From Octopus sinensis (taxonomy: Eukaryota), in NCBI RefSeq assembly GCF_006345805.1, contig NC_042997.1, positions 100,254,001 through 100,318,000 on the forward strand: a DNA stretch of 64,000 nucleotides, in the 5' to 3' direction. The notes below the pieces were generated by a model. That model did not search any database, had not been told where the DNA came from, and was given only the letters and a program-made list of their open reading frames with translations. Position numbers and translations under genes: made by a program. Positions 9,601-62,699 of this stretch are shown piece after piece. The number at the start of each line of letters is the position of its first letter. The stretch's first letter is position 1.

Positions 9601-12600
9601 AAAAAGAAAAAAAATCAATAAGTATTCCTGAAGCTTAAGAGAATATCTGATAGCATATCCAGCTTCAATTCAGTCTCTATATTCTTTTGATTAATATTGA
9701 ATGAATACAAAATCTATTAACCTTATTGAATAACTAGGCCATGAACACAAGCAATAGTGTAGCAAAATTTAGCAGGTTCCAAGGCCAGAAAAATGTGTTC
9801 CTTCCCTCAAATGCTATGCAAGAAGAAAATTGGTAAATTCAAAATTTAGTGAAGCTGAATTCTAATTATTTTGATGACATTAACAATACAATTTTAGTAA
9901 ATCAATTTTAAATCTTCTTTGGCAAACAGTCATTAAAAAATACAGAAATCACCATTATGAATTATTATAATCTGTACTAAAAGTACCAAAATACCATTTT
10001 AATATTGAAACTAATTCTAATGAATTCAACGAATCAAATGTGTGTAGACTGAGATGCAAATAAGTGAAATTGTATTATTAGATTACAAGAGGATGCTGAA
10101 AGCACAAAGGAAGGTTCAAATTATCTCAAGAAATTAAAAATGTAGTCAAGGATTATACTATTAAGATACTACTTTCTATCTTTCAATTACAATTTGACGG
10201 CAATAATTTTTTTTATGAATGATTTATTTCTAACACACCTGTTATAATATGTAGTCAACTTTATTTGCATGCTTTGTAGGAAAACTTTTATTTATTTTAG
10301 ATATATAACTACGTTTATCTGCACACAAAATGGAAAACGATTTTGACACTTTCATGAAAATGCAACATACAGAAAATTCATCTGCTATTGCCTGAGAGAG
10401 AGAGAAAGAGAGAGAGAGATCGTTTTCAAATAACCTTCATAATGGCAAATTCAAAGAGAAAATATAGATCAAAGAAAATCATTAGGAAACGTGTTAGTTA
10501 TGGAGTAAATGTGCTAGGTTTGCTGTTAACTGGAAACGAAACGAAAAAAGAAATTTTGATTAGATTTGCTTGAGATATAAAAACAAAGAGCACCTAGCAT
10601 TGAAACTATCTCTTAAGGCAAATAGTATGCTTTCGGTGATCTTTTATACACATTTGCCGACGTTGGCACGGTAGTCGACCGAATTAATTGTAACGAACCA
10701 TGCAGGTCTTTGTTTCGAAGAGTATTTGAAATGTTTAGCTTCATCTTCACGTGTATGATTAAGGCATTCATATATTCGGCATAGATTTAGTGAAATTAAA
10801 ATGGCAGATAATCGAGAGATGTAGGAATAACCGATAATTAAATAATAATAATAAAACGAAATTCATGAATACGAGAACATTTTGACAACACAACTCATGG
10901 ATACAAGATGGTATATAAACATCTAGATATGTAATTCAGATGTAAAATTGCAATAGCATCTTTTAATTGCTTTATTTATGCATATCCATTCTGCTAAAAA
11001 GAAAAACCAGTTCTATAAAATTAATGACTATTAGCCCCTTTGATTGTTCCCTACTTTAAACAAATATGAACAGAAAGGGAAAACGGGAATTAAAAAAAAG
11101 CAAGATATCTTCACTTTTTATCTAATGAGACTCAGTCATCTGCTATATTGGTCTTTATGAAGAGGGAGAAGCAGAATTGAAGGGGACTAGCCCAACCCTC
11201 CTACTGACAGGATTGCTACTACTGCTGAGCTACATACTGCATTACAAACCCCCTACAAATAATTATAAGCATGTAAAGATTGTGTCGCTTGCTGATATTT
11301 TTAATTCCGAACGGGAACTATCAAGCGAATTTAGTTAAAATCAATAAGAGAGCTCGACTGATATTGTGGGGGAAAATCTGCCTTTAATTGTCATTCACAG
11401 TAACATATAAAACATCTAACTAAACAAGGCTTATGTAAATAAAAATAATTAGACACGTTCTCAGAGATTAGCAAAGGAAAATGGAAATGACAAGAATGTG
11501 CGAAGCTGAAAGAGCGTGTGAGGGGAAAAAGAAAGACTAGGGAGGGGGAGTAAGAGGAAACGAGTAGAAATAAAGGAAAACCAGGAGAGGTGAAAGAGAC
11601 TGTGAGAATGAGAGTAGGATATAAAAGCATAGCGAGAACGTGCAGTAATACTAATAGGAAATGTAGGTGAGTTAGAAATAATAAAGCCGAGAGGAATCAC
11701 GGAAAAGAATTATATATATATGTGTGCGTGTGTGTGTGTGTATTTCTTTTTCGCGTTTTCTATCGTTTATGTAAACGAGAGAGAGCATGAAAGCGAGAGA
11801 AAAAAAAAAGGTGAATGACAAGGAAGAGAAGTTATAAGAAAACGAAAGAAGTCAAAAGGAAGTGAGGAAATGACAGAGCAACGGATTGTAAAGAGAATGA
11901 GAAAATTTACTTCTGAAAAGACTGAAGTGAACTGGAAAACTGGAAGGTAGAGGTTTGGGTAGAAAGACACTTTTTTCTTTTTCTTTTTTGTCTTTGGAAA
12001 ACAAAAGCAACGTCGAGATGCGCTGCCGACTAATTAAGCAGGCACTGCCATACTTTGTACTCACTTTCTAAAATGCAGGGGAAGAGGTAGGTTGACTTGC
12101 ATAATAATCATACTAGTTATTTTTGATAGAAGCAGTTGTAGAGAGAAAAAAAGTCTAGGATACAATAAAAGCAACACTACGTTGCCAATAATCAAAAGCA
12201 TGACAATAATTAATCTTCACTTTGAAAGTGGCATTACTGCAGATGATAAGGAGTGTGCAAGAGAAGTTGTGTGCGTGCTTTATTTATTTATTTTTTTCTG
12301 AAAAGGTTAAAGTGCTCTGAAAATAGTAATGTGAAACGAGATCAGAGTAGCTTTATAAAGCTGAATGGAGAATATTGATCAACATCGATAAAAATGGTTG
12401 CACTTTTTTTTTTTTCAAGTGATTGAGTGCATGCGTGTGTGTCTGGTTCTGTTGCGTTAAAGCAAGCAGACGTAGTTCGATGTGATGGAGCTCGTCAAAT
12501 GAAACAGCATGACAGCTCCTCCTCCCATGCCAACACGTGCTGCTGCTGCTGCTAGATAATACTGACAATAAAACAAACTTTCAGCACATTAAACGTTTTT

Positions 12601-13992
12601 AATTTTTTTCTTTCCGTATCTAAACACAATATAATTTCCCTATGTCTAATCTGTAATGGCGAAAATGTGAACTTTTAAAGAGGTAAACCAAAAACAAAGG
12701 TTTGGAAAAGCAAAGAAAAAATAAGCGATTTCTTTCTAATCGATATTTTTTTTTAATCGATAGTTTTCAGTAAACATAAACACTAAAACAAAGATTCAGA
12801 TAACACTACGAATTAAACAAAAACTACAAATCAAGTGAGAATGTAACCAGATTGTGGAAGTCTGGTTGTATGACATGTCAACTAAACTAGTAAGGAGTCA
12901 GTCACGCTATAACTACCTTCACCTATGCATATACATACATATAAATACACCTATCACTTATGAAAAAACATAAATATTTCGAAACAATTGTACAAAAAAG
13001 AAAAAATTGCAAAGCAGAGCATATGCAGGAATTTTTATCGCGTGTTCCTGAGCATAAATTGCAAATCCAAGCTTAAACCATGTTGACCAGACGCAATGAG
13101 ATAACGGAGAAAACAAAATGAAAGATGAGTAGTAGGCAAGGCAGAGACATTTTGTAAAGGGTAATAAAGAAGAAAGCTTAGGACAGGAAATTATTTTTGA
13201 ATCCCGGAAATCTGATAGATTACAACTGCTCAGAAGTGGGGGAAAAAAAAACATATCCGTGTTGTTGAGAGGAAAAGTTAGGAAAATATCACTCGAAGTA
13301 TATTGTGAAGAAGAAGAAGAAGAAAAAGGAAATAACCCATTACATATCCGACAAGTTGAGAATTTTATTGGATCAGAAGAATAAACAAACTTGTTTCTTT
13401 CTTAAGACTAGATTGTATAGATAGTATACTTGGAGCTGTTAAGCTGAGTGAAACAGTAATCAGCATTCAGTGAACACTGGAGAATGATGGTAGTGTGTAT
13501 GTGTGTGTATGCTTTGATCAATCGTTCGAAAAGTGTTGTGTTTGTAGTGTTGTAAAGTATTGTTTGCTTCAAGTGATATAATAATAATATAGTCTGTGTT
13601 ATATTCTGTTATAGTGTGCAAGAGTGGCATCCAATATTATGGCTAATCCAGTGTTCTATTTGTGTGTGTGTGTGCTCCATGTGATTTCTAAATAGAATTT
13701 ACAGCACTCTGGTAACCTATTTAGCAGTACTAAATAGGTTAACAGTGTTGGGGAATTTTGGCCGCTGACCAGCGTTACAGAACTGATGGAAAATACTTCG
13801 GTTAAAACGCAAACAGCGGTTTCAGTAGTATTGGACAATTAATGAGACAGAAAAAGAAGAGGAAAATAAAATGATATAAAAAATAAAAATGTAAATACGA
13901 AGGTAAAAAAAAAAAAGTGATTAGAGAGAGAACGAGAGAGTGAGAGAGAGGAGTAAAAGAAAACGGCGACAATGAAGTCTAGCGAGGAGTGG

Positions 13993-14030
13993 CTATAAAT
14001 AGCAGTTCTTTGTCCCGGCCCACTGCAGTC
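13993..14030 (+). promoter_or_regulatory. MEF2-consensus/TATA element CTATAAATAG with downstream CAGTC
   Basis: gCTATAAATAGc matches both MEF2 YTA(W)4TAR and TATA. gcAgtc lies 33 nt downstream and a Kozak-like accATGg is at about 14064. Confidence 0.3.
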
Positions 14031-14419
14031 GAGCGACCACTACTGGACCCTGCTTCACACACCATGGCATGTTATTGCTCCATACATACACATACACATC
14101 ATAGTATATATTTGCATGAACAAACATAAATACAATCATCATTAAATTTCTTTAGAAAACTACAAACATTATTGTTACTTCTCGCCACCTAAATTTAAGC
14201 TAAGACTTTTTTTTTTCTTTTTACCATACAAGTTCTTACTTCCCTTCCATTTTTCGAAATAATGTGTCTCCCTTGACGTGTGTGCTTGTTCCTATGTTCT
14301 GTTTATTTTCATCTCAAAACAAAAATACACTCGCTTATCAATCACAAAAGATCAGTACCTATATTTTCTGCCACTCGTTTGTTTTCATTCTGGCCAGATA
14401 TGTAAAAAATCTAGCTTAC

Positions 14420-15111
14420 CTTTTAAAAATGTGGCATTTCAAGAATGCTGAAAAGGCGAGCCAAACCACAGGGGAAAAATAGCTGCTATAATCACAATGA
14501 GAAAACTGCGAGGATGGAGATGAAATAGTCTGCAGGAACTGGTGTTATAGCTATAGAACAACGAGGAGGATCGCTAATGTTGTTACTACTACTAATAGTA
14601 GTGTTAGTGCAAATCCTAACGACAGTGCTGGCCAACACACTAGTACATTCCTAGCAGTGGAAGCCCAGATCGCAGCAGCAGACGAGAAGCACTCAGTAAT
14701 AGCAGCAGCAGTATTACAGTGGATATAGTGACAGTGGGAGCACTACCAGTGAGATAGTAGCAAGAGAAGCACGTACGTTGCAGGTGGAGGACATCGGTTT
14801 TGGTAGGAGTAACAAAAGCACGGTGGAAGTAGGAGGAGGCAAAGATATACAGGAAGTAATAGGGGGAGCGTCTCCCTCCTTATTCATAGTCAAACTAGCA
14901 GTAGTAGTAGTAGTGGCTACGGCGGCAGTGGTGAACACAAGGTCAGCAGACCATATAAAGCCAAGGTCACAGAGCATGCTCAGTCGTTCGTTTTTAGCTG
15001 CCGGCAACCGACGGTACGTTCAACAACGATAATACTTTCGGATAAGACCAATACGATCGTAGAAATTGAGTGGCAACCAACATGAACGTACCGCACCCTC
15101 GCCGAGCGACT
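14420..15111 (-). ncRNA. Candidate non-coding first exon (alternative 5' leader or lncRNA)
   Basis: Inr-like gcTCAGTCgc (15108-15113) to a strong donor AAAAG|GTAAGC (GT at 14419-14418). GC-richer with trinucleotide runs. No ATG-initiated frame is open across the donor. Confidence 0.4.
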
Positions 15112-15159
15112 GAGCGTGTGTGTAAACACGTACGCTACTGAGGGACATTTTCAGTATGT

Positions 15160-15282
15160 GTGTATATGTATGCGCGTGTGTGTGTATGCATCTCTCTCTC
15201 TCTCTCTCTCTTGCACACATTATATATATATATATATATATATATAAGTGTGTGTGTGTGTGAGAGAGAGAGAGAAAGAGAG
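15160..15282. repeat. Compound (TG)(CT)(TA)(GA) microsatellite
   Basis: Directly visible. Confidence 0.9.
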
Positions 15283-15710
15283 TGACGCCATCTATCCCCG
15301 GGAATCATCGCTAAACAGTGGCTAGCTGCGGCGGTGGGGGTGGTGATCGCCCCCACAGTTATTTTAAGAACCACAATGGCACATTTAATATACAAAGCGT
15401 CAACAGTAAAATAAAGTAGACCAGCAGCAACCAGCGTGTATCTATTAAAAATAATCCAAGACTCATGTTTCGTGTACATAATCGTCGAATAAAATAAGAA
15501 AGAGATGGAAATGTTCAAAACTTTCTTCTGTTTAACTATTTAGATTTATGTTAAGAAATAAACTGAACTTATTCGAGAAACCAATTATTGTTATTCTGAA
15601 GATTAGTTGAGTATTACGAACACAATTACAACATCTGAAATATCACTTTCAAAAACTGTTTTGATGATTGATAAACCGAAAGCTAATAACACTTTTACCT
15701 TTTTCTATTT

Positions 15711-16068
15711 TTTTACTTGTTTCAATCATTGGACTGCGGCCGTGCTGGGGCACTGCCTTGATGCGTTTATATAAACAAATTGCCCCAATACTTGTTTTCT
15801 TTTAAAGTCCGAGACTTACACTATTTGTCTCTTTAGCTGAACCGCTAAGTAACAGGGACGTAAACAAACACCAGTTGCCAAGCGGTGGTGGGAAAGAGAC
15901 AGACACTCTCACACGACGGGCTTCTTTCAGTTTCCGTTCACCAAATCCATTCACGAGGTTTTGGCAGGTCCAAGGCAAAAGTACAAGACACTCGCGCAAG
16001 ATGCTACACAATGGTACCGAACCTGGAACTATGTGGTTGAGCACCAAAATTCTTACCAAACAGCCAAG
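15711..16068 (-). mobile_element. Octopus-type tRNA-derived SINE, CpG-retaining copy
   Basis: Full head and body homologous to copies at 22495, 23372, 27770 and 37213, but CpGs are intact (gcggccgtg, acgacgggc, ctcgcgc). Confidence 0.8.
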
Positions 16069-18368
16069 TTTTTAGTAATCACTATAATTAAGCATATTGG
16101 ATTTTTTCACCCTCGATCTTGCACAAATCTGATATATTGCTGAATTTTAAGGGGGAAATATTCACAAAAATAATAAATAAGCAAAACGAAGAAAATACAG
16201 GAAAACATTTTTCTGGGCCGATTCAAATATAATCATCATTTACAAACAAGTAAGGAAATTTAGATTTAATATTTCAAAATACCGCACCTGACATAAAAAG
16301 CAACATGTTCTTCCAGTTTGTCAAAGAGACAGTAGTTGCCACTAGTTTTATTATTTGCATGTCTGAAGTGAATAACTATCGAATGATCTTCAGTAAACTG
16401 AGAGGAATTATTTCCTATAAATGGTACAAATTCCCAGTTGTTCTCCTCTAAAACTAATTCCATTTGCATTTAGTGCCCTTGACAAACAATGTGTTGCACC
16501 TGTCTATACTATGTACAGACACCCCGCCCCTCTATTAAACTCCCAAACTTCACAGGTAATGCGCGAAAACATCTTAATACAGATGATACAAAACGTAAAC
16601 CTTGCAAATGTTCCGCTATAAATTTACTCAATCAAAACACACGTAAGTAATTAGGAATTTGAAGAAATATCACAGAACCCTGCACAAAGCAGGTAGGAAT
16701 AATTACTATTTCATTTTACCAAAAGTTAAGAGAGGTTAATAGGATGTAAACAAACGGGGAAATGAAGAAAAGTCAAGTAAAAAAAAGTTTACTAAGTTAT
16801 ATCCTTTGAAATATGATTCATGCAATTTAATTAATATATATATACACACACATACAAGTAGCTTCATTGAAGGATCATTTGTTTCACATAGATTTTCCAA
16901 TACACTTTTTAATATTTTAGCCACATTCAAAGGAGATACAGATATATTACTTGTAAACTAGAAAAATATCAATGTCATTTAGCTACACATTCTGACACTA
17001 TATCATGTACTATCACATATTATCCTCTCCTAAGTCTATTTCAAAGTAAATGAGTAAACTCATTTTTCTCTTTAAATTTTACTGAAGCTTATTTTAGCAT
17101 ATTTTTTTTTAATTCACAAATGCTTTTCATCATATGATGTAAAAACCCATTATGATAAAATACTAGTAATTTTGATTAACACTTGAACTACTTTTGAAAA
17201 GTTATTTAATTTAAAAACATGAACATTATGAGTTCATATTGCAATAATAAAAATAGGAAGGCTAAAAATATTCAGTGTAAATTAGATTTTTTTAATAGCT
17301 CTAATTTTAAGACAGTAAAGAATAACAAAATGTTTTTACACTTAAGAAATATTAACTATGAAAATTAGAAAGGAATCAAACCTAGATATATAAATTCTGG
17401 ATATAAAATTAACAGTTACTCATAGTTCAATTATTTTTACTGTAATTAAGCTAAATATAAATTATTACAGGGAAATACTTCATATATAAAAACACTTTTC
17501 ACAGGAAATTGTTTCAAGATGAATAAGCAGTGAATAACATATAGTTGGTATCTATTGAACTTTCCAACAACTTATAGTGAACAAAACAAACAATTGTCAT
17601 AAATCTTGAAAACTACCTACGTGCCTCCTCCACAAGTAGGAAGTAGTAGATATATAAATATTTATACATTCACAAGTAAGATCATGAATGTATATCCAGT
17701 TTAAGTGGATATCAAAATGCAATGTTTCAATGTTGTATATTGTCTCTTGTTAAACAATAGCAAATAACAGTGTATCAAGTACAGGATAGATTAAAAACAG
17801 TGCAGTTTATAACTAGGATCTCATATCACAGCTGTTGTATTTCTGCCGAGAAGGCTGCAGAAAGGAAAAAAACTTCACCTTTGTCAATTTGAATAGAAAA
17901 GGCATTTAACAATGGCATACATGCTATACAATAAGTTTGGATAAATCTCCTTACAACTGTTCAGGCTATATTTGAGGATTGTAAAATAAGCCAAAAATGA
18001 ACACAAAGTATTAATTACTTTTGTTGTTGATGAGTTTATCTAATTAAAAGAACCACTACAAAGATTTAAGTTACAGACTTCAACTAAGAATTGTCCATTT
18101 TAAACTCTTTCTGTAGCCATATTTATGCTCCATTTAATTTTTTAAACCAATAATTTAGAGAGGTTTCATTTAAATCACTTCATTAATTAACTGGTATTTG
18201 AAACAATTTGACAAAAAGTTCTTATATAAAATGATGGAAAGTTTAAAATTTATATATGAACAGATTAAAACGATTTTTTTTTTTGTATCACTGATACAGA
18301 AGTGGTCTCAAAGGAAGTTTGTTCAGCAAAGTCTGGTAGTAGTTACATGTACATTGAGTAGATTGACT

Positions 18369-23253: not shown

Positions 23254-23984
23254 AGTAGATCATAGGATTTGTTAATCAACCAAACCAATGACTAATCTCA
23301 CTTTCTGCTTCCTTTTTAAGTACAACAAAGTACACTGAAACTGTCAATGTAAATTATAATAAATATATTTATCTTTTACTTATTTCAATCATTGGACTGT
23401 GGCCATGCTGGGGCGCCACCTTGAAAGATTTAGTTGAATTGATTCCAGTACTTTTTTTTAAGCCTTATATTTATTCTATCAATCTCTTTTACAAAACTGC
23501 TGAGTAAAAGGGACACAAGTTGCCAAGCAGTGGAGGGGACGGACACACACACATACACATGAAACATTCTTCCTTCAAGTTTTGTCTACTAAGTCCATCC
23601 ACAAAGCTTTGGTCAGCCCAAGGCTACATTAAAAGAGAGTTGCTCAAAATGTCATGTAGTGGAATGAACCCAGAACTATGTGGTTGGGAAGCAAACATCT
23701 TACTCACGCAGTCATGCTTGACCTATGTTGGTAAATACATTTTAAAAGTAGAATACTGAATATTGAAATAATACAAACTATAATTTTTATGAGAAACTTT
23801 ACACACATTTAATTGAATTAATTAAAAACATCACTTGCCACATTTTAACAGGGCTAATCTGGATTGCTATTTACACAAGTTGTTAACCCATATTAACCTA
23901 CACAAGCTAACTTACATTTGCTAGCTGTCAAATTCAGAGATCTAAGATAAACTACTTGATAATCTGATGATATTTAAGAAATTC

Positions 23985-27105: not shown

Positions 27106-29479
27106 AAAAACATAACATAAATGGCGGTGCCCCAGCATGGCCACAGCTCGTGAGCTGAAACTAGAATCAATCAATCAATCAATACCAATTTTTGCAAGAA
27201 AACTGGCTTAATTACAAAATCTAAATAGTTAACAATATTGAACTTCCACACCAATACTTAGAAGTGTGCCACCAAACTGGTGAGAAAATTTATTTGGTAA
27301 AGCAGGTCATTATCAGAAATATTATATGCTTAAGGAAATCATCTCAAACCTAATCCAGCCTAGGTTTAGATTACATATCCTAGGATAAGGTCAATTTTCA
27401 TATTCAGATTCAGAACTACCAAACAAACTGCTCTTCTATTATCAAATCTTATGTGGATCTTGATTACTAATCAAAGATGAGCAACTAAACATAATTTAGA
27501 AATTCCTTTTCAATAGAAAATGCTGCTAACAAAAGCTAATAAGTTGAAAGGTCAATAACAATGTTTATTTAACCAAAACAAGTTTACCTATGGGATTTTG
27601 TGGTCATTTGATTATATAATTATATAAAAAGAAAGAAAAAGGAAAACAGTAGCTAACCAACACAATCAATCATTTAATTCTCTTGTTTTGCGATATCAGA
27701 AATTTTATAGGAATACATGAAGATAAGACTGATTAGTCCCCAAACTAAGTGATATTGTAGAAGATATATTTATCTTTTCTTTTAATCTTTTACTTGTTTC
27801 AGTCATTGGACTGTGGCTATGCTGGGGCACCTCCTTGAAGGGTTTAGTCAAACAAATTGACCCCAGTAGTTATTTTCCCTTTTTTAAGTGGTACTTATTC
27901 TATTGGTCTCTTTTGCCAAGCCACTTTACAAGTGATGTAAACAAACCAACACTGGCTGTCAAGTGGTAGGTGGGAGCCAAACACAAACACAAGTAAATGT
28001 ATGTATGTGTTTATATATATATATATGTTTATTTATTTTCACACATACATGTCTTTTTCTCAGTTTCTGTCTACCAAATCCACCCACAAGGTTTTCATCA
28101 GTCTAAGGTTACAGTAAAAGACACTTGCCCAATGTGCCAGACACTGGGACAGAACCCAAAACCATGTGGTTGGGAAGTAAACTTCTTACCATACAGCCTA
28201 TAAGGAGAAAGGAATGTGATAATAAATTCATCCAACTATAATCAGGAGACACAATGATCCCAAAAACATAGAAGTGGCAAAAACTTATTCTAAATAAATG
28301 ACCAAACTGCAACAATTTTGTCACAACTATCTTTCTTTTGAACATAAAGTCTACTAAGTTGCAATATTTCATTATAGAACTAGTATTACAGGATTGTTTA
28401 TACAAGGCTAGATTCAATCAATTATTGAGTTCTATATTATTTGCAATGCAGTAGTGAAGTAACAGAAATGTAGTTTGATATTTGTTGCTAACATCAAAAA
28501 TATTTATTTTCTTAGAAAAATCATTACATCATTCTCACATGTATAAAGAAAAATTTAAGGTGATTCATATTAGTATGAAAAGATAATACAATACTTCACA
28601 ATGAGCTTTATATTTTTCTACTCCATTGCTGAATAAAAATGTTTTTGGTTTGTATCTCGAGGTTTTTATGCTAGCATAATATCTCCATAAATTGTTAGTG
28701 TTCATACATCACTAGATGCCCTTCTTTACAAGAATCATTCAACTGTGAAGTAAGACGGAGATTCATTTTCAAAGATTGACCTAATGCAAAATTATGTTGT
28801 TCTCGATAAACACAATAGAACAGGATTGAAACTCATGCATTTCATGTCAATAATCCAATATATTAACCCCTCAACTACTATTGACCACATTCAGAAACTG
28901 AAATTTGCAAGCTAACTAGAGAATCTCAACCTTGTTACTCAACTAGCTAAAATCAGCAGCTAAAACTTCATACAGCACCCAACCAGCTTAAAAAAGGCAG
29001 GCCGTTTTGAATAATGTCATTAAGAGGAAAGATGGGAACAGCCATGGCCCAAATGCCTTTGATCAAAGGTGCACTCATTCAGAGCTAATTTGGGGCTAAT
29101 CAACAACTAAATGAAAATTTCTCTCTACAATCATTATTAACAAAGGAAGCAGATTTCAAAACCAGGACTTTTAACTTATCAATAGAAATCAGATAGTTAA
29201 GATGAAATAGGAATTCAATAACTCTATACTAAGACCAAATAAATGCTTTTCTACAGTGCTGCCCACACATCTTGCATGATACATCCCTCAAACAAACATA
29301 TATTTGGGATTGTATATACAATAAATCATCAACCAGATATTCACACAAGTCTTCATTCATCCAACTAGCATTGTGTAGTTGAAGACGAGAGCCTCACAAT
29401 TCATCTCTGCTCTTCTGAAAACTACCGTAAACATATCCACTTGATGTACTCATCTTCCTTCTTCCCATAAAATCCACAA

Positions 29480-31379: not shown

Positions 31380-31890
31380 TTTATTCTTTTACACGTTCCA
31401 GTCATTTGACTGTGGCCATGCTGGAACACCACCTTTAGTAAAACAAATCAACCCCAGGACTTACTCTTTGTAAGCCTAACGCTTATTCTATCAGTCTCTT
31501 TCGCTGAATCGCTAAGTTTCGAAGACATAAACACACCAACATCGGTTGTCAAGTGATGGTGGGGGGACAAACACAGACACAAACACATACAAATATATAA
31601 ACATGTATATACAAGGCTTTGGTCAGCCTGAGGATATACTAGAAGACACTTGCCCAAGGTGCCGTGCAGTGAGACTGAACCCAGAACCATGTGGTTGGGA
31701 AGCAAGCTTCATACCACACAACCACTCCTGCCTATATATATATAGTTTCCATCCTACCAAATCCACTGAAGACATTGATCAGTACAGAGCTATAATAGAA
31801 GATATTTATATAAAGTACTACCCAACAGGACTGAACCCAAAAGTACATGGTTGCAAAACAAGCTTCTTAACTAGATAGCCACGCCTGCAC
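31380..31890 (-). mobile_element. SINE with a second tandem head
   Basis: Same family; gactgaacc head appears twice (about 31675 and 31830). Confidence 0.7.
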
Positions 31891-37212: not shown

Positions 37213-37592
37213 CTTTATCTCTTACTTGTTTCAGTCATTGGACTGTGGCCATACTGGGGCACCACCTTGAGTTTCATTGAACAAATCTACCCTAGTACTT
37301 GTTTAAAGTTTGGTACTTATTCTATTGGTCTCTTTTGCCAAACTACTAAGATGCAAGGATGTAAACAAACCAATGGCTGTTGACAAGTAGTGATAGGAGA
37401 CAAATACAAACAAAAAATATACATATGCACGAATCACAGGCTTCCATGCAGTTTCCACTTATTAAATTCACCCACAAAGCATTTGTTGGCCCAGGGCTAT
37501 AGCAGAAGATGCCCAAGGTGCCATGCAGTGGGACTGAACCTGAAACCACAGGTTTGCAAAGTGAGCTTCTTAACCACACAGTCATGCCTGCA
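37213..37592 (-). mobile_element. SINE
   Basis: Same family as 15711. Confidence 0.75.
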
Positions 37593-46376: not shown

Positions 46377-46647
46377 CAAAATTTATAACATTAAATTACA
46401 AAAAAAAAAAATTACAGAAGAATTAACTTATCTAAAAGCAATATGATTTTTTTTAATGTATCAGTTAAAAGATAAGTTGATGCAATTTTAGTTTTATACT
46501 TTTAATATAGCAACCAAAGCAATAACAAAGATTTTTTGTATCAATCATAAATTATACCCAAGAGAAAAGAATTCTAAAATTCAAATTTCAATAAACTTCA
46601 TCTCAAACAGAAATTTTGATATATCTTGAATACAAAGATTCTTTAAC

Positions 46648-46790
46648 AGGCTGTGTGGTGAGAAGCTTCCCAACCACATGGTTCGGGATTCAGCCCCACT
46701 CTAGCACCCTGGGCAAGTGTCTTTTACTATAGCTTGGGGTTGACTAAAGCTTTGAGAGAATTTAGTAGACAGAAACTGAAAGAAGCTCAG
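46648..46790 (+). mobile_element. SINE head
   Basis: ggctgtgtggtgagaagcttcccaaccacatggttcggg. Confidence 0.7.
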
Positions 46791-46907
46791 CGCGCGCGTT
46801 ACTCTCCCCTTGCTTCGACATTGAGTGATAGTTGAAAACAAATATCACCATCATGTGAGTGGTGTTCATTTCCAATCTGAAAACATTTCTTGTCATAGGA
46901 AAATATT

Positions 46908-47160
46908 ATCATCATCATCATCGTTTAACGTCCGTTCTCCATGCTAGCATGGGTTGGACGGTTCGACCGGGGATCTGGGAAGCCAGAAGGCTGCACCATG
47001 CTCCAGTCTTATCTGGCAATGTTTCTACAGCTGGATGCCCTTCCTAACGCCAACCACTCCGTGAGTGTAGTGGGTGCTTTTTACATGCCACCTGCACAGG
47101 TGCCAGGCGAGGCTGGCAACAGCCACGGTCGGATTGGTGTATTTTACGTGCCACCGCTCC
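46908..47160 (-). mobile_element. Young RTE 3' tail
   Basis: Near-identical to 57863-58110. Confidence 0.85.
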
Positions 47161-47386
47161 CTTGGAAACAGGTGAAGGTTGATAACAAGAGCATCCTGCT
47201 GTAGAAAATTAGTTTCAATAAATTCCAATTGACTCATGTGAGCAGGGAAAAGTTGACATTAAGATAATGATGATGATGATGTATTCAAACTGCCCAACCC
47301 ATGCCAGCATGAAAGATGGGCATAAAATGATGATGAATACAAAGCAGCTATCATACAGCTAAGAATAATGGAATAAAATTACTCAC

Positions 47387-47445
47387 CAATGAAAAGCCCC
47401 AAAATGAAAGTACACAGTCCCAAGACCATAAAGGAATGGAGCATC
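47387..47445 (-). CDS. KDM6A: KDM6A/UTX-like coding exon (equivalent of human exon 5)
   Basis: tttttag|GATGCTCCA...TTTCATTG|gtgagt; 59 nt, phase 0 to 2. Encodes DAPFLYGLGTVYFHFGAFH(W), versus UTX [20 protein letters not shown]. Confidence 0.95.
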
Positions 47446-47850
47446 CTAAAATCAAAAAAATACATAAATACTTTTAAATTTCTACATATACATTTCATAT
47501 TAATCTTATTTTCTAATTACATAAATGTTTCAAACAAAAATGAGAAAAAAAATTGTTTCTTTCATACTTTCTATAATATTTTCACCATATTTTTTTTACT
47601 TATTTTCATTCACTTAATTCAATACTTAATTTCTGTATAAAATATATTGGTTTCCAGAATAAACATATTTTTGGAATCATTTTTAAATCTTTGCTTTTAG
47701 CATAACTTTTACCCAGTAAAAAGTGGGAAACCTGAAACGATATCGACATCTGCTTGCAACTACAAAGGCAGCTAAAATAATTAACAAAAGCATATGATAT
47801 GCTAACAAGTCATAACTGCTTGTATGTGACAGCTAGAGTTTGTTTTTTGA

Positions 47851-47907
<57 letters not shown>

Positions 47908-47910
<3 letters not shown>

Positions 47911-48304
47911 GTGATACCTGTGCCGGTGACACATAAAAAGCACCATCCAAACGTGACCGATGCCAACCCTGCCTCGAATGGCTTCTGTGCTGGTGGCACA
48001 TAAAAAGCACCATCCGAACGTGGCCGATGCCAGCACTGCCTTGACTGGCTTCTGTGCCGGTGGCACATAAAAAAGCACCAACCGATCGTGGCCGATGCCA
48101 GACCCCTCTGGCACCTGTGCAGGTGGCATGTAAAAAGCACCCACTACACTCGCGGAGTGGTTGGCGTTAGGAAGGGCATCCAGCTGTAGAAACACTGCCA
48201 GATCAGACTGGAGCCTGGGGCAGCCCCTGGCTCCCCAGACCCCGATCGAACCATCCAACCCGTGCTAGCGCGGAAAACGGACGTTAAACGATGATGATGA
48301 TGAT
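47908..48304 (+). mobile_element. Young RTE 3' UTR and tail with tandem ~65-bp units
   Basis: Repeated ggtggcacataaaaagcacc units, then the conserved tail and (GAT)n; flanked by TA repeats. Confidence 0.85.
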
Positions 48305-48379
48305 ATATATATATAAGAATTTTTACATGGATCTATATTAACTTCTTCTAAGGGGTGATGGGTAAAAAGTGTAAATGCA

Positions 48380-48590
48380 TATTATATATATATATATATA
48401 TATACACACATGTATGTGTGAGTGTGCATATGTATTAATGTATTCGTGCATACATATGTGTATGTGCAGATGTATGTATGCGTGGATGTATGTATATGGG
48501 TGGATATATACATGTGTATACATATGAACGTACTGATACATATGTGTGTATATATGCATACGTGTGTACTTGCATATATACAAATTTTCA
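48380..48590. repeat. Compound TA/TG microsatellite
   Basis: Directly visible. Confidence 0.85.
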
Positions 48591-50886
48591 TAACTTTATT
48601 TATACCTTATAAACGAATATTCCATTATTTTATTAACTATAAACTTACCTTATTTATATTTAAACTTCCCCTATGATCTCTATTTAATTTATTCATTGAT
48701 TGTTCTAATTATATTTACCAACTCTATCTTATCACCAATCAACCTGTAAACTCCATGCCCGAACATATAAAAATACAAATCATAAACAGTATCATTCAGT
48801 CTGCTATAATGAATCCATAAACACATATAAAACATCCAAGGGTATATCCCCCCCCCCTCTGAAGATATTATGCTCATGTCAATTTAATATTTACTAAGTA
48901 TTAATTGAAACAGCAGTAAGTGACAATGATTAATTTGCTGTTAATAATAAACAATTATTAATTTCCTAATCTCTATTTTCTTTTTCTTCTCATTTATTTA
49001 TATATAGGTACACTCGCACATTACATATATACACAAGAAGCATTCCTTTATGGAATTAAGTATAGACAAATACAGTAGCAGATGTCTCAAACAACAATTA
49101 TGAATATATTGAATAGAGACATGAACCCCACAGTGAATGGATGCATTATCAAATATGTAAATGCATTCCTGTCCTTAAAAATGTTTAGGTAAAAGGCAAA
49201 GAATTTTCAAGTACATGAGTGTGAAATACTTTCAGGATCATTTCTTCTGTGCTTAACACAGCAACAATGATATTTAGATTTTTCCCTGCTGTTTAACAAA
49301 CTGTTCTAACCATAGGCTGGCTCCTTAAGGATCAACTATGTTCATCCACAAAATTTGCTTTCCAGAAAGACTATCAACTGTCATAAATGTAATTTGGCAA
49401 ATTCATGTCTAGCAATGATCATATCAGGTTAATATCTATCCTGCAGAACTAGAACCACCATTTTCCTGGTTATCAGCATGCTATCTAGTGTTTTTGAAAT
49501 GCAACTATCACAAATATATTTTGAGACAGTTGCATTTTGTCTTGATATATCTTTAGCAAGCTGACTGATGGAATATTGCATATTACCTCATACAAGAAGA
49601 CATGCATTGCATCATCTACTAGGTTGTGTAATGACTTTTATTTTCCTTGTATTTATATAATGTTTTAAAATTATTCTATTTGCAGTTTCCAAATTAATGT
49701 TAATAGACTAAACAAAATAGTAGTTTAAGCCACAATTGAGCTGACCATGGGCATTCTCAGTGTCATATCTACTTGATGCTACTTGTTGGAAAACACTTTA
49801 AAGATTATGCAATCTAAAATAGTTTAAGTGAAATGTGCTTACTTTGAAATTGAGAATTTCTGAAGTGACAAGTGTTCACTTAGAATTACAAATACTGTGT
49901 TATCCACTCATTAACTAGTGTACGTTGAACTATGTAAAATGTTAGAGAAAGAAACTTAGCTGTTTCTTCCAATGCATACATCTAAAGCAAAATTTTTTCA
50001 GGGACCCCAATTTACTATTTTGTTACATGAACCACCACCCTACCCCAAAATCTTATAGGCCCTGGTTGAGAACCACTGGTATAGATAGTAAAATTGATGA
50101 TCTGCACAATTCCTACTCACTATCATTGCTTCACAAAATATGCTACTCTATTGTTCTCTCTCCTACTACATTCAGCAGATACATTTGAGCTGCAATCACA
50201 AACCTGCATGCAAGAAGTTTATGACATATACTCATTTCTCTTCAAAGTAGTGGAGAAATTCAATTCAATAATATGTCTCCAAGTGACAGAACAGGCATTT
50301 TCAAGATCAAGATTATATTTCTCTCAACCAGTCTGAGGAATGAATTAAAAAATGTACCCATTCTCCCCTTGAGTCACTCACTTTGACTGAAAGATATCTA
50401 CTTTAATGAAGTGAAGACACTATTTAGAAGGTGACAGTAAATTATCTTTGGCATATGGATGTGCAACTCTCCGTAAAATCAAAGCAGATAAACTAGGACA
50501 ATGTACTGAACTACTCCAGATATAATGTACACACAAGAAACATTTAGCAGGTGAAGGACAACTAAAAGATAAGCATAAATGACATATTTTTCTAAAAATA
50601 GATGCAATGATATAGATAGTCATGAGAGATATTTCAGATTTGTTGTATTTTTAATCTTGTAAACAAACTTTGCAGTTTTCCAAAAACATCAACTTAGAAC
50701 TTTTTTTATAAGTTCAGGTAGTGTTATAGTACTTATAGGCTTTGCAAATCCTCCCAGACTCATATCAATGATGCAGCTGTAACCAAATTCAACAGCTTGT
50801 GGTTAGTGGTGAGAAGGAACTAGAGTCAGTTCCAAATGCTTGTAACATAGCAAACTCCACTAAGTTTCCCCAAGCATGAAGTGATT

Positions 50887-57862: not shown

Positions 57863-60291
57863 ATCATCATCATCATCATCGTTTAACGTCCGTTCTCCAT
57901 GCTAGCATGGGTTGGACGGTTCGACCGGGGATCTGGGAAGCCAGAAGGCTGCACCAGGCTCCAGTCTTATCTGGCAATGTTTCTACAGCTGGATGCCCTT
58001 CCTAACGCCAACCACTCCGTGAGTGTAGTGGGTGCTTTTTACGTGCCACCCACACAGGTGCCAGGCAAGGCTGGCAACAGACACGGTCGGATTGGTGCAA
58101 TTTATGTGCCACCAGCACGGAAGCCAGTCGAGGCGGCGCTGGCATCGGCCACGATTTGGATAGTGCTTTTTACGTACCACCAGTCCAGGGGTCCTGGCAT
58201 CTGCCGGGTGCCAGTCATAGGATTGGTTCAATTTCGATTTCACTTGCCCCAATATGTCTTCGCAAGCAAAGGGGGTTGGCATGGGTGCCTGTCGTCAGAT
58301 GAGGTTCAATATCGACTTCGCTTGCCTCAACAGGTCTTTGTGTCCAAGGGAGGAAAGGCATGCATAAGTGGGCTGGGCTCACTTGTCCTGCCTGGTCTTA
58401 TCACGTACAGCATATTTCCAAAGGTCTCGGTTGCTGGTCATTTCCTCAGTGAGGCCTAAAGTTCAAAGGTTGTGCTTCACCACCTCGTCCCAGGTTTTCC
58501 TGGGTCTACCTCTTCCACGGGTTCCCCCAACTGCTAGGGATTGGCACTTTTTCACACACCTATCTTCATCCATTCTCGCCACATGACCATACCAGCGCAA
58601 TCATCTTTCTTGCACACCACAACTGATGCTTCTTAGGTACATTTCTCTCAAGGTACTAACGCTCTGTCGAGTATGTACACTGACATTACACATCCATCGG
58701 AGCATACTGGCTTCATTCCTCGCGAGCTTACGCATGTCCTCAGCAGTCACGGCCCATGTTTCACTGCCATGTAGCATGGCTGTTCGTACGCATGCATCAT
58801 ACAGTCTGCCTTTTACTCTGAGCAAGAGGCCTTTAGTCACCAGCAGAGGCAAGAGCTCCCTAAACTTTGCCCAGGCTATTCTTATTCTAGCAGTTACACT
58901 TTCAACGCACCCATCCCCACTACTGACTTGGTCACCTAGATAACAGAAGCTATCAACTACTTCTAGTTTTTTCCCCTGGAAAGTGACGGAAGTTGTTTTC
59001 TGCAGATTTTCGGAGGTTAATGCTCCCAAGCATCTGCCACATACAAAAACTATCTTCCCAGTTAGCCTACCTTTGACATTGCTGCACCTCTTATGTGTCC
59101 ATAGCTTACACTGGGTACATCTTATAGAGTTTCTACCTACACCTTTTCTACAGATCGAGCAGGGCCATCTTCCTGAAGACATTTGTGGATTGTCTACCTT
59201 CCTACTTATTAGTACTTTGGTTTTAGTTGGGTTGACTCTAAGGCCCCTCGATTCTAAACCCTCCTTCCACACCTGGAACTTCTCCAGTTCTGATAGTGAC
59301 TCAGCAATTAGAGCAAGGTCGTCAGCATAGAGGAGCTCCCAGGGGCAACCTGTCTTGAATTCCTCCGTAATTGCCTGGAGGACTATGATAAATAGGAGAG
59401 GGCTGAGTACTGAACCCTGGTGGACCCCAACCTCTACTTTGAATTCTTCTGTGTACATGTTGCCAACCCTAACCTTACTTACGGCATCTCTGTACATGGC
59501 TTGCACAGCCCTCACCAGCCATTCATCTATCCCTAGTTTCCTCATTGACCACCAGATAAGGGATCGGGGGACCCTGTCAAAGGCTTTCTCCATGTCAACG
59601 AAAGCCAGGTACAGGGGCTTATCTTTGGCTAGGTATTTCTCCTGCAGCTGCCTTACCAGGAATATAGCATCAGTGGTACTTTTCCCTGGCACGAACCCAA
59701 ACTGCATCTCATCTAAACTAACTCTCTCTCTAATTAGTTGGGCTATGACCCTCTCCGTAACCTTCATTACCTGATCCAACAGCTTGATACCTCTGTAATT
59801 ATTTGTATCTAAAGCGTCACCTTTACCTTTGTAGCAGTTGACTAGTATGCTGCTACACCAGTCATTGGGTATGACTCCTTCGTGTATCACCTGGTTGACT
59901 ATACGGGTGACTAGGTTATAGCCAACACTGCCAGATATTTTGAGCATCTCTGCAGTAATTCCTGATGGGCCTGGGGCTTTCCCTGTCTTCATGCTTCTAA
60001 TTGCTTTAACTACCAAAGAATTTTCAACTCGGATGGCTGGTCCCTCTGTTGGGTTGACATTCGGCAGACTCTTTATCCCATCCATTTTCTTTATTCAGCA
60101 ACCTTTCATAGTGGCATCTCCAAACCTCTCTCTTTGCATCCTCATTTAGCGCAAGTGAACCATCATCCATGCGAACACACTTCTCTCCTACCATATCACG
60201 ATTCTCTCTCACACACTGTCTTGCAACACGAAATACCTCAAGTCTTTCATCCTCATGGCTCAGAACATTGGCAAATTTTTTCTTATCCACT
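57863..60291 (-). mobile_element. Young 5'-truncated RTE-clade LINE
   Basis: (ATC)n tail at 57863, a 3' UTR shared with dispersed tails, and RT coding sequence. No endonuclease domain within the copy and no clear TSD. Confidence 0.93.
58601..60085 (-). pseudogene. RTE reverse transcriptase ORF (494 aa, disrupted)
   Basis: Motifs GKAPGPSG, NYRGIKLL, QFGFVPGKSTTDAIF, FVDMEKAFDRV, GVHQGSVLSPLLF, LYADD. A frameshift near 60085-60100 separates it from the upstream frame (60024-60290). Premature TGA, probably from CGA, after ..VQER, with the frame continuing LRWYGHVARM. Confidence 0.92.
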
Positions 60292-61292: not shown

Positions 61293-62446
61293 CTGAAATA
61301 AAACAAAATATTCAATCATTTCTTATTGAGTAAAATATATATATATAAAAAACTTTAAGTCTTACTCTTACACAGAATAAAGTACTGAAGCACATTTGGT
61401 TTAGTTGTTAGAGCACTACATTACCAGCTTAGTTACTCATATCCCACCACCAGAGCTGAATCAGACCAGTCCATCTAGATTCACATAAGTACTGCTTGCA
61501 GGGCCAATGAGAGGTGGAGTAAACCAGTACATCAGTATGAAGCCCAAAGAATTTCTGATAGTGAGAATGAAATCTCATTCTCTTCCAAGAGCAAAATCAC
61601 CTTGTTCTACTTTGCAAATTTCTTCTTCTAGACCCTGACCTTGACTGATCAACACCACTGCCACTACAAGACTGACTTGCCTAAAACACACTTCTTGTAC
61701 AGAAAAATTCTGTGATGCTTGTTATTTGATAGTTATGAAATGTACAATCAGTTATAAGCTGTTAAGTGCATTACTCATCTTTATTTTACATTGATACACT
61801 TATATCACTAACAAAAAGCATCAATTCCGTTTTAATTGATAGGTTGAAAGATTTCAGTATACCTGAGTATACAAAAAGTTTAAAAATAACAAGCATATAA
61901 GAAATTTATGAGCTGAAAAAGTAGACAACCAGCCCCAAAACCCAAGAGTTAGAATATGGCTAAGAAAAATCAAGCCAAACCTTGAAATGTCTATCTAGCT
62001 TAATGAATTGTAAAAGTATATTTGCTCCAACAGTCCATACATACATAAACAAAAAATTCAGAATCAACCCATGCTAACAAGAAGAAATTATATAAAATTC
62101 AAATATTTGCAGTTTTTAATGCTAAATGAACTTATAAATAATCATAGATTTTTTTTTACCCTTTTAAATTGATAATTACAATACCTTACAAAATTTTTAA
62201 TCAACATTCATTAAGTTAGAAAACTCTTTCAATAACTTATAAGATTAGTAATAGATCAAATGGTTCTGAAAATCGAAACATGCATCTATTCTTGAGAATG
62301 GTACTTTTACCAAAAACTTTTCTGGAAGGATATTGTCCAGTTAAGTAAACTTCAATAAACCAAGATACGTTTTCTCAAAGTATTTAAAATATTGCAAAAT
62401 AGAGCAAAAAATGTTATTCAAGGAATTTTATGAAAATATGACTTAC

Positions 62447-62588
62447 CTTTACTATATTGTTCAAGAAGTAAATGTACATGACCCAATTCACGGTAAATAT
62501 TAGCAATAGCGGGATCCTTGCCTTTTGATGAATCTTTCGTAAGCAGAATTGCATGTTCTTGGATTTTCTGTTGATAATATATAATACC
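62447..62588 (-). CDS. KDM6A: KDM6A/UTX-like histone H3K27 demethylase, internal coding exon (equivalent of human exon 3, first TPR)
   Basis: Minus strand reads tttcag|GGTATT...AGTAAAG|gtaagt; 142 nt, phase 0 to 1. Encodes GIIYYQQKIQEHAILLTKDSSKGKDPAIANIYRELGHVHLLLEQYSK, whose end matches UTX ...CQLGHFNLLLEDYPK (recalled). Confidence 0.93.
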
Positions 62589-62699
62589 CTGAAATAGGAA
62601 ATGTTTTACTTTATTTTATAACAGAATTTCAAGTGGCTTTAAATATATATATGGCAACTAAATCAATACAAAGAATGTTTAAGTATAGATTATCAGAAA

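Follow-up and report, generated by a model that had tools for sequence, protein, structure and literature searches.

Does the giant intron of the octopus KDM6/UTX gene contain a second, internal start of transcription? The question arises from a window of 64,000 nucleotides of Octopus sinensis DNA (contig NC_042997.1, positions 100,254,001 to 100,318,000), by which we mean the whole stretch analysed and to which all coordinates below refer. The original prediction for this locus placed a CpG-rich island deep inside the intron, at 14420-15330, and read it as an internal promoter with a non-coding first exon from which an N-terminally truncated and partly KDM6B-like histone demethylase could be made.

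The host gene and its giant intron

Exons of the host gene were located with an approximate human KDM6A probe and then confirmed against UniProt A0A0L8FIN7 from Octopus bimaculoides. Three KDM6/UTX exons, all on the minus strand and 100% identical to that entry, were recognised: exon A (62588-62447), exon B (61292-61243) and exon C (47445-47387, DAPFLYGLGTVYFHFGAFHW), the last of them, whose donor lies in phase 2. Because positions 1-47386 of the window contained no further UTX exon, the intron that follows exon C must exceed 47 kb, and the CpG island begins about 32 kb downstream of exon C within it. The next exon lies beyond the window, as do the first coding exon or exons of the gene. To our knowledge, octopuses have a single UTX-type KDM6 gene.

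A CpG-preserved domain within the intron

The predicted island is present, and its CpG density is far beyond chance. The window averages 1.6 CpG per 200 bp, yet 18 CpG fall within positions 15001-15200 (scan-corrected Poisson probability ~1e-10), and the two CpG-richest 500-bp windows in the entire 64 kb start at 14751 (observed/expected ratio, o/e, 1.05) and 15001 (1.24). The full interval of 14420-15330 has 38 CpG, a GC content of 0.457 and a CpG o/e of 0.82. It passes the length and o/e thresholds of Gardiner-Garden and Frommer (at least 200 bp, CpG o/e at least 0.6), with a G+C content of 0.43-0.49 in the peak that lies under their minimum of 50%, as does that of the interval; the vertebrate definition of a CpG island thus applies only in part, because GC stays below 50%.

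The island is the peak of a larger domain, absent from the original prediction, that spans 10401-16800 (6.4 kb, 165 CpG) and has a CpG o/e of 0.79 versus 0.21 in the rest of the window (whole window: CpG o/e 0.28, mean GC 0.34). In the minus-strand sense, about 1.7 kb of the domain lies upstream of the peak and about 4.7 kb lies downstream of it, and GA/CT-rich tracts occur throughout 10-14 kb. Nothing else in the window compares with it except the 5' side of the gene itself (62-64 kb), which provided an internal comparator: the 2-kb bin 62001-64000 has a CpG o/e of 0.78, and from 62251 to 64000 CpGs are preserved at an o/e of 0.55-1.23. The asymmetry of the intronic domain is like that of this gene's 5' CpG domain, which continues several kb into the body. 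Elsewhere in the window, CpG o/e is 0.42-0.58 in a LINE (58.6-60.1 kb) whose RT ORF is intact.

No coding content was detected in the domain: six-frame ORFs of at least 45 aa from both strands of 10.1-17 kb had no match in Pfam, and the long frames of 14.2-15.5 kb had no match in a collection of 5.8 billion proteins. The only protein match obtained, P0124, was rejected: it is a spurious ORF from a call in which TGA was decoded as Trp, and its cluster has no other member. A nested protein-coding gene was likewise discarded, no ORF having a true homologue or domain. Apart from one SINE, the domain sequence has no other copies in the window, and a search for transposon termini around it yielded nothing beyond microsatellites and a single 18-nt inverted pair of the kind expected by chance. 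Neither Rfam at gathering level nor a tRNA scan gave a match; the sub-threshold miRNA families of a permissive Rfam search fell without exception on a microsatellite palindrome and were dismissed as artefacts.

Age of the domain and probable germline hypomethylation

Within the domain lies an old SINE-like repeat copy (15690-16070) that has kept 14 CpG (o/e 0.76). Copies elsewhere have 0-3 CpG in eight of nine cases, and a poorly aligned copy near 46.8 kb has 12. Outside CpG sites, the divergence from the SINE consensus is 0.17 for the copy in the domain versus 0.17-0.25 for the seven well-aligned copies, and a comparison of CpG retention at inferred ancestral CpG sites set the domain copy apart (Fisher p = 7e-4). 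An old SINE has therefore kept its CpGs here at equal divergence, which speaks for lasting germline hypomethylation and against a young insertion; both this test and the second species described below show CpG retention relative to the flanks that sequence age does not explain. Judged from CpG decay, the domain at 10401-16800 has probably been hypomethylated in the germline over a long time, and the surrounding KDM6/UTX gene body would be methylated, with its CpGs lost through deamination.

This pattern can be set beside the methylome of O. bimaculoides, a genome with mosaic methylation of gene bodies only and fewer than 10% of CpGs methylated (PMC9476566). In that species a subset of expressed genes is methylated along the gene body, the TSS and promoter being unmethylated in the class termed MP2 (Macchi 2022, PMC9476566), and one KDM6A fragment model falls in the fully methylated class 'pattern1', a class defined at gene level only (PMC9476566 supplement).

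Conservation in a related octopus

Positions 11537-12947 (minus strand) have an orthologue in a related octopus, on Logan contigs L002-L006, which are collinear with the window, unspliced and end in low-complexity sequence. This 1.4-kb stretch was assembled from five independent runs (within SRR11869384-94) and has a substitution-only identity of 91.6%. The CpG o/e of L002 is also 0.79, and 24 of 37 CpGs are common to both octopuses.

A conserved non-coding core at 12416-12612 reaches 95-99% identity in 100-column windows, with a block of about 200 bp that is 98-99% identical, and near-identity runs on to ~12300 across one homopolymer indel. The core holds an E-box (CACGTG) and GCATGC, and its extension holds TATCGAT at 12384. 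Two splice-like signals are also conserved, an acceptor-like ttgttttattgtcag/ at ~12562 and AAA/GTGAGT at 12064 (the slash marks the splice boundary here and below). The hairpin predicted in the conserved core was no better than those of shuffled sequences (z = -1.4 and -1.9).

Promoter-type motifs around the peak

All of the sequence motifs on which the original prediction drew were recovered in place: the Inr-like TCAGTC, the GA/CA tracts and the YY1-like motif. The Inr-like element (15113-15108, minus strand) sits in the CpG peak, and its hexamer occurs 47 times in the window and is not significant alone. A window motif scan further placed the 9-mer GCTCAGTCG at 14978-14986 on the plus strand, convergent with an identical minus-strand copy at 15115-15107; with the motif present on both strands, it does not decide the orientation of a TSS. 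Upstream in the minus-strand sense, a YY1-like AGATGGCGTC (15293-15284, minus strand) contains the only GATGGCG in the window, and a CACCC/GC-box-like CACCACCCCCACCGCCGCAGC (15325-15345, minus strand) was read from the sequence as a motif resemblance only. The GA/CA tracts make up the compound microsatellite palindrome (15188-15288; inverted repeat I1), which in minus-strand reading runs (CT)n(CA)n(TA)n(TG)n(GA)n and has a predicted DNA hairpin of -29.9 kcal/mol (z = -8.7). Reading the sequence around 15111 revealed neither a TATA box at -30 nor a DPE at +28.

The candidate leader, its donor and a competing acceptor

From the Inr-like element to the donor, the candidate non-coding first exon or leader (14420-15111, minus strand) measures 692 nt, has 29 CpG and a GC content of 0.465 against the window mean of 0.34, in agreement with the predicted GC-richer leader of about 690 nt. 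It contains seven uATGs, all closed by stops, compared with 10.1 +/- 2.5 in shuffled sequences; uATGs are not depleted in it. The 5' splice site AAG/GTAAGC (14414-14422, minus strand; first intron base 14419) is as strong as predicted, with a PWM score of 11.2 that just 6 of the 3788 minus-strand GT sites reach, the true donor of exon A among them, and it lies at the edge of the GC-rich block. A stop-free frame of 42 codons without an ATG (14544-14419) does end in phase 2, the phase of the exon C donor. The phase is nevertheless irrelevant, because uORFs precede any KDM6 AUG and the open frame has no ATG.

An acceptor-like tatttcatctccatcctcgcag/ at 14505 ranks, by a crude score, in the 99.6th percentile, and each of the three true UTX acceptors scores lower. 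Because this strong site precedes the donor by 86 nt, the donor can equally well be read as the end of a cassette or poison exon within the intron (14420-14505, minus strand), and it thus has the competing acceptor that a non-coding first exon should lack. The 86-nt candidate exon is not a multiple of three, and in a hand translation from the exon C phase a TGA stop follows.

A possible internal promoter and its alternatives

That the island is an internal promoter or a regulatory island is well supported, because its CpG preservation is old and partly conserved and because it has no coding, transposon or known-RNA content. Our leading interpretation, to which we give about an even chance, is that it marks the peak of a 6.4-kb, long-unmethylated regulatory region and acts as an internal TATA-less promoter of the CpG type. 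A start region is favoured since, in O. bimaculoides, the intragenic unmethylated pattern is documented at the TSS (PMC9476566). Active-promoter chromatin would exclude the gene-body methylation machinery, transcription would start in the CpG peak at ~15.0-15.3 kb, more probably on the minus strand, and the GC-richer 0.7-kb leader would be spliced at the strong donor 14419. We infer the hypomethylation itself, as well as promoter activity, strand and splice partner. The promoter reading first put forward for this locus is in part strengthened, by an island that is unique, non-repetitive, non-coding and apparently long unmethylated in a CpG-depleted gene body, and in part weakened, by an Inr that is not significant and has a plus-strand twin, by the closed uATGs and by the competing acceptor. 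Should a promoter be present, we would roughly allot one third of the expectation to a KDM6 transcript without its first exons and two thirds to a nested non-coding RNA on either strand.

Among the specific alternatives, it is tentatively plausible that the island is the promoter of a separate non-coding RNA gene nested in the intron, on either strand, with the block at ~12.3-12.6 kb as its body or second exon. This would fit the lack of coding potential, the unmethylated-like state of the whole 4.7 kb downstream of the peak, as for the body of a weakly expressed gene, the conserved block with the acceptor-like site and the conserved AAA/GTGAGT, and the recovery of the same 1.4-kb stretch from five independent runs of the related octopus. 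Those runs may, however, consist of plain genomic reads, the contigs show no splicing and run out into low-complexity sequence, and neither an Rfam family nor a significant hairpin was found.

That the domain is a cluster of conserved non-coding elements in the intron, of enhancer, insulator or Polycomb type, kept free of methylation by bound factors and giving no stable transcript, falls on the low side of possible; the donor and the Inr would then be there by chance. The 98-99% conserved block ~2 kb from the peak, in which an E-box and further motifs contain CpG, would suit such a cluster, as would a domain larger than a simple core promoter, the GA/CT-rich tracts through 10-14 kb and promoter motifs that are not significant, but the sharp CpG/GC peak with a top-ranking donor at its edge is more promoter-like, and the unmethylated intragenic pattern documented in octopus is that of the TSS (PMC9476566).

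The more specific proposal of a minus-strand internal KDM6 promoter, with the 692-nt non-coding exon spliced from 14420 to the next UTX exon and an N-terminally shortened demethylase as product, is doubtful. The island lies on a gene of the same strand, with a strong donor in a compatible phase, and a germline-unmethylated state suits a testis-active promoter. In published TPMs from testis, the N-terminal KDM6A fragment stands at 2.9 versus 9.2 and 8.2 for the other two, and in arms and hatchling it exceeds both. When the other two are set against the N-terminal fragment, testis gives the highest ratio (5.9) of 11 tissues compared, with arm and hatchling clearly lower, in a comparison that spans three fragmentary gene models and mixed libraries, in which the other two models may be from another gene and the N-terminal model ends in a SINE-derived exon. 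The under-representation of the N-terminal fragment in testis is only suggestive and weakly favours a truncated KDM6 isoform, and the TPM ratios are equally explained by intronic polyadenylation, 3' bias or multi-mapping of SINE reads. Translation is a further obstacle, seven uORFs preceding any KDM6 AUG and the open frame having no ATG, and the phase match is a 1-in-3 event.

The product itself would also depart from what was predicted. The skipped exons reach only to about human residue 148 and the TPR region extends to before residue 398, so a truncated protein would keep most of its TPRs; in place of a partly KDM6B-like enzyme, the outcome would be a TPR-shortened one. The TPRs of UTX mediate its interaction with MLL3/4, PR-DUB and MiDAC, and a long-read study located all alternative splicing of human UTX in exons 12-17, with promoters not discussed (Fotouhi et al. 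2023, PMC10296593), a distribution that also counts against an isoform of this kind. A literature search for KDM6A alternative promoters and TPR isoforms returned no papers, and the downstream TPR peptide, compared with the protein collection, had no cephalopod protein among the matches listed, all of which were shorter than 460 aa. The furthest-reaching form of the idea, in which a conserved germline- or testis-active internal promoter yields a demethylase without its first TPRs and promoter use replaces part of the vertebrate KDM6A/KDM6B duplication, we regard as improbable.

It is similarly unlikely that the donor has nothing to do with the CpG island and either ends the 86-nt cassette or poison exon (14505-14420) or serves recursive splicing (AAAAG/GTAAGC), through which the intron of more than 47 kb would be removed stepwise. 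The acceptor at 14505 does outscore all three true UTX acceptors, and AG and GT are juxtaposed at 14420/14419. Moreover, a transcript from another cephalopod (L001) has a 79-nt insert with a stop precisely at the junction that spans this intron, from which it follows that unproductive splicing occurs in this intron. Against this, ~0.4 such acceptor-donor pairs are expected by chance across the window, the 79-nt insert has no match anywhere in the window, 14420-14505 included, and the CpG domain is left unexplained. Finally, the idea that chance, or the recent arrival of a transposon, retrocopy or piece of organelle DNA, accounts for CpGs not yet lost is close to refuted: young repeats such as the LINE at 58.6-60.1 kb do show intermediate CpG levels, but the domain has no other copies in the window, no transposon protein and no terminal repeats, the old diverged SINE inside it kept its CpGs, the state is common to a second species, and the probability of a fluctuation is ~1e-10.

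Significance and comparison with known systems

If the island is an internal promoter, the KDM6/UTX locus would have a second, independently regulated transcription unit that fragmentary annotations have missed and whose product could be either an H3K27 demethylase with a shortened TPR region or an intronic non-coding RNA that is conserved. Were the testis or germline promoter reading true, the island would be a methylation 'hole' kept by an intragenic TSS in a mollusc; were it only an enhancer, a key chromatin regulator would still have a conserved element controlling it. More generally, CpG decay maps can expose hidden regulatory regions in the giant introns of gene-body-methylated cephalopod genomes, with repeat copies usable as internal clocks for that decay, and this locus is a clean example that draws on sequence only. 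The feature itself is of a common type, though its host is unusual, and current understanding would not be overturned.

Very long introns can be removed with the help of recursive splice sites, such as the ratchet points of Drosophila and the RS-exons of vertebrates. The octopus site is like these in its AG/GTAAG juxtaposition and in having a strong acceptor-donor pair deep in an intron of more than 47 kb; unlike recursive splice sites, it has an A at -3 and a short pyrimidine tract. Unlike an RS-exon, the 86-nt candidate has no GT at its start and so cannot rebuild a donor, and the recursive-splicing model offers no link to CpG preservation. As for the KDM6A/KDM6B pair, the proposed octopus enzyme would be a KDM6 protein whose TPR module is reduced, whereas KDM6B is a separate gene without any TPRs.

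Orphan intragenic CpG islands reportedly serve as alternative promoters in vertebrates (Illingworth et al. 2010; Maunakea et al. 2010). The octopus island is similar in being CpG-preserved deep within an apparently methylated gene body, with a splice donor downstream, and in being TATA-less with GC-box-like and YY1-like motifs. It differs in its genome, which would have mosaic, gene-body-only methylation, in its GC content of 0.43-0.49 and in a domain size of 6.4 kb in place of 1 kb. From the MP2 genes of O. bimaculoides (PMC9476566) it differs in that the patch lies ~32 kb inside an intron without an annotated start and that its methylation is read from CpG decay. With those genes it would share a methylated body set against an unmethylated start, the same CpG signature that the KDM6/UTX gene carries at 62-64 kb.

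CpG-preserved domain in the giant KDM6/UTX intron

Three minus-strand KDM6/UTX exons, A (62588-62447), B (61292-61243) and C (47445-47387), were mapped by tblastn with an approximate human KDM6A sequence, and their joined peptide was 100% identical, over the covered part, to UniProt A0A0L8FIN7 from Octopus bimaculoides. Exon C ends at a phase 2 donor (CATTG/GTGAGT). Because the downstream KDM6 exons (AIKAYQQVLY...), known from L001 (Logan run SRR9970004), another cephalopod's spliced transcript with 77% KDM6 protein identity, were absent from 1-47386, the following intron exceeds 47 kb and leaves the window at its left end. At the junction equivalent to that after exon C (47387), L001 carries a 79-nt insert (427-505) that begins GTAAAA directly past ...GAFHW and produces an immediate stop ahead of the normal next exon; this resembles splicing at an alternative donor farther downstream, or a poison exon, within the same intron.

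The original prediction placed a CpG-rich island about 32 kb into this intron past exon C, as CpG counts and exon mapping bear out. The island (14420-15330) contains 38 CpG at an observed/expected ratio (o/e) of 0.82 and GC of 0.457, with o/e 0.28 for the whole window. Its 500-bp windows from 14751 and 15001 are the CpG-richest of the 64 kb (o/e 1.05 and 1.24), and 15001-15200 holds 18 CpG, whereas 200 bp of the window hold 1.6 on average (p about 1e-10 after scan correction). It forms the peak of a 6.4-kb domain (10401-16800; 165 CpG, o/e 0.79 versus 0.21 for the rest of the window), outside which most 2-kb bins lie at 0.03-0.2. The only comparable stretch, at 62-64 kb, faces the gene's real 5' end; across 62251-64000, including exon A, o/e climbs rightward to 0.55-1.23, which presumably marks the trailing end of an unmethylated zone belonging to the true KDM6 promoter, itself outside the window.

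Five of the window's 11 GTACGT/ACGTAC sites and two of its three CGTACG sites fall within 360 bp of the CpG peak (14771-15128), and three DRE-like TATCGAT sites occur at 12384, 12739 and 12756. Elsewhere, an intact 494-aa minus-strand ORF in the upstream KDM6 intron (58601-60085), matching RVT_1 reverse transcriptase (E = 2.8e-30) and weakly a PHD finger, is a LINE-type retroelement; its o/e of 0.42-0.58 points to fairly recent insertion. CpG content is also intermediate in another area, around exon C (46500-48700, o/e about 0.5), which has a repeat in common with 57900-58460 (ORFs starting MLAWVGRFDRGSGKPEGC...); rather than a regulatory island, both probably represent younger repeats.

Age, conservation and content of the domain

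A dispersed SINE-like repeat, with at least 10 copies in the window (outside the domain, for example, at 20119-19781, 23374-23703, 26163-25863, 27769-27975, 37222-37370 and 39236-39090), served as a clock. The copy within the domain (15690-16070) carries 14 CpG (o/e 0.76), whilst eight of the nine others keep only 0-3. Inferred ancestral CpG sites gave 7/32 in the domain copy versus 7/205 in the others (Fisher p = 7e-4), at a non-CpG divergence from the family consensus of 0.17 versus 0.17-0.25 for seven well-aligned copies. Since so diverged a copy kept its CpGs, the domain is old, and by this sequence clock it appears to have long escaped methylation-driven deamination rather than to have been recently inserted. 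The repeat translates to S(F/L)DCGHAG(A/T)PP..., and the C-terminus of A0A0L8FIN7 (SFDCGHAGAPPLVEQIDPRTYSL) is an exon derived from it; the window contains no exact copy of that exon, the best being 87% identical (31402-31470, plus strand).

When the other long frames of the domain were searched without profiles, the sole match was between a junk ORF and the Logan protein P0124, which derives from five 1.38-kb contigs of a related octopus (L002-L006; runs SRR11869384/85/90/91/94). These are collinear with 12947-11537 at 91.6% substitution-level identity; L002 has an o/e of 0.79, as in the domain, and 24 of 37 CpGs are common to both, so that over 11537-12947 the CpG-preserved state appears to be shared with another species. 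A non-coding core at about 12416-12612 reaches 95-99% identity in 100-column windows, versus about 92% for the whole contig, and contains an E-box CACGTG (12534), GCATGC and conserved CpGs. Near-identity continues to about 12300, including the TATCGAT at 12384; a hairpin predicted in the 12416-12612 block was not significant.

No Pfam domain was detected in ORFs of at least 45 aa on both strands of 10.1-17 kb, no frame of 14.2-15.5 kb matched a collection of 5.8 billion proteins, and Rfam at gathering score and a tRNA scan returned nothing. Neither other copies of the island interval in the window nor terminal repeats bracketing the domain were found. Permissive Rfam miRNA matches were rejected, as all fell on a compound microsatellite, (CT)n(CA)n(TA)n(TG)n(GA)n, at 15188-15288, which mimics low-complexity miRNA families. 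This near-perfect palindrome folds as a hairpin (z = -8.7) and, lying just upstream of the CpG peak, could extrude a cruciform there. Taken together, the domain reads as a conserved, long-unmethylated, non-coding and putatively regulatory island.

A proposed internal transcription start region and its alternatives

The 6.4-kb CpG-preserved hole, its sharp CpG/GC peak and a top-ranking donor at the edge of that peak are best explained by an internal transcription start region, and the chance that the region contains a promoter is about even. The hole extends farther to the left of the peak (about 4.7 kb) than to its right (about 1.7 kb); minus-strand transcription would fit this asymmetry if the unmethylated zone spreads from the start in the direction of transcription, as at the gene's 5' side. 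The promoter activity is putative, as are its strand and splice partner.

In O. bimaculoides, <10% of CpGs are methylated, clustering within the bodies of some expressed genes, with transposons and intergenic DNA largely unmethylated; MP2, one large gene class, combines a methylated body with a TSS and promoter free of methylation (Macchi et al. 2022, PMC9476566). The v1 annotation of this species splits KDM6A into Ocbimv22018482m, Ocbimv22002927m and Ocbimv22020383m (PMC9476566 supplementary tables). Ocbimv22002927m belongs to the fully methylated class (PMC9476566 supplement), in agreement with the extreme CpG depletion in the window, whilst Ocbimv22018482m is the N-terminal fragment, equivalent to A0A0L8FIN7 and the exons of this window. 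This fragment was recorded at 2.9 TPM in testis versus 9.2 and 8.2 for the other two, at 15-21 in arms versus 5.6-10 and at 2.5 in ova versus 0.25 and 1.9 (PMC9476566 Table S6), a comparison of fragment models across differing libraries, in which the other two may not belong to this gene and the SINE-derived exon ending the N-terminal model is uncontrolled. As the three tissue profiles are not proportional, published octopus 'KDM6A' expression needs careful reading. The testis excess of downstream over N-terminal signal is suggestive of a germline-active internal promoter, although the ratio would shift in the same way through intronic polyadenylation; such a promoter, if real, would also explain germline CpG preservation.

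A nested non-coding RNA in the domain and, slightly less probably, an enhancer-type element without a stable transcript are tentative alternatives. That the promoter makes a truncated KDM6, from a minus-strand start near 15111 through a 692-nt leader, is unlikely. The GA/CA tracts, the YY1-like AGATGGCGTC (15293-15284, minus strand) and the GC-richer leader are all in the sequence, and the donor AAG/GTAAGC (intron from 14419) is among only six of 3788 minus-strand GT sites scoring as high, the true exon A donor being another. The Inr-like TCAGTC (15113-15108, minus strand) is likewise present, but the window has 47 copies of the hexamer, and the 9-mer GCTCAGTCG lies also on the plus strand (14978-14986), convergent with the minus-strand copy. 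Around the proposed start, neither a TATA box at -30 nor a DPE at +28 was seen, and the leader's seven upstream ATGs, each closed by a stop, represent no depletion, as shuffles give 10.1 +/- 2.5. The predicted 42-codon open frame exists and ends in phase 2, but its phase match carries no weight because it lacks an ATG. In addition, an acceptor-like tatttcatctccatcctcgcag 86 nt upstream of the donor scores higher than each of the three true UTX acceptors. An 86-nt cassette or poison exon could thus end at the donor, or the donor could act in recursive splicing, although chance alone is expected to yield about 0.4 such acceptor-donor pairs across the window. Nor would the product be partly KDM6B-like, as first proposed: of a TPR region lying before human residue 398, only the part as far as about residue 148 would be lost, leaving the product TPR-shortened. 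A young insertion or chance fluctuation is highly improbable as the origin of the domain.

To our knowledge, orphan intragenic CpG islands and alternative promoters have been little studied in this lineage. The domain, with its putative internal transcription start region, adds a new instance of this known type.
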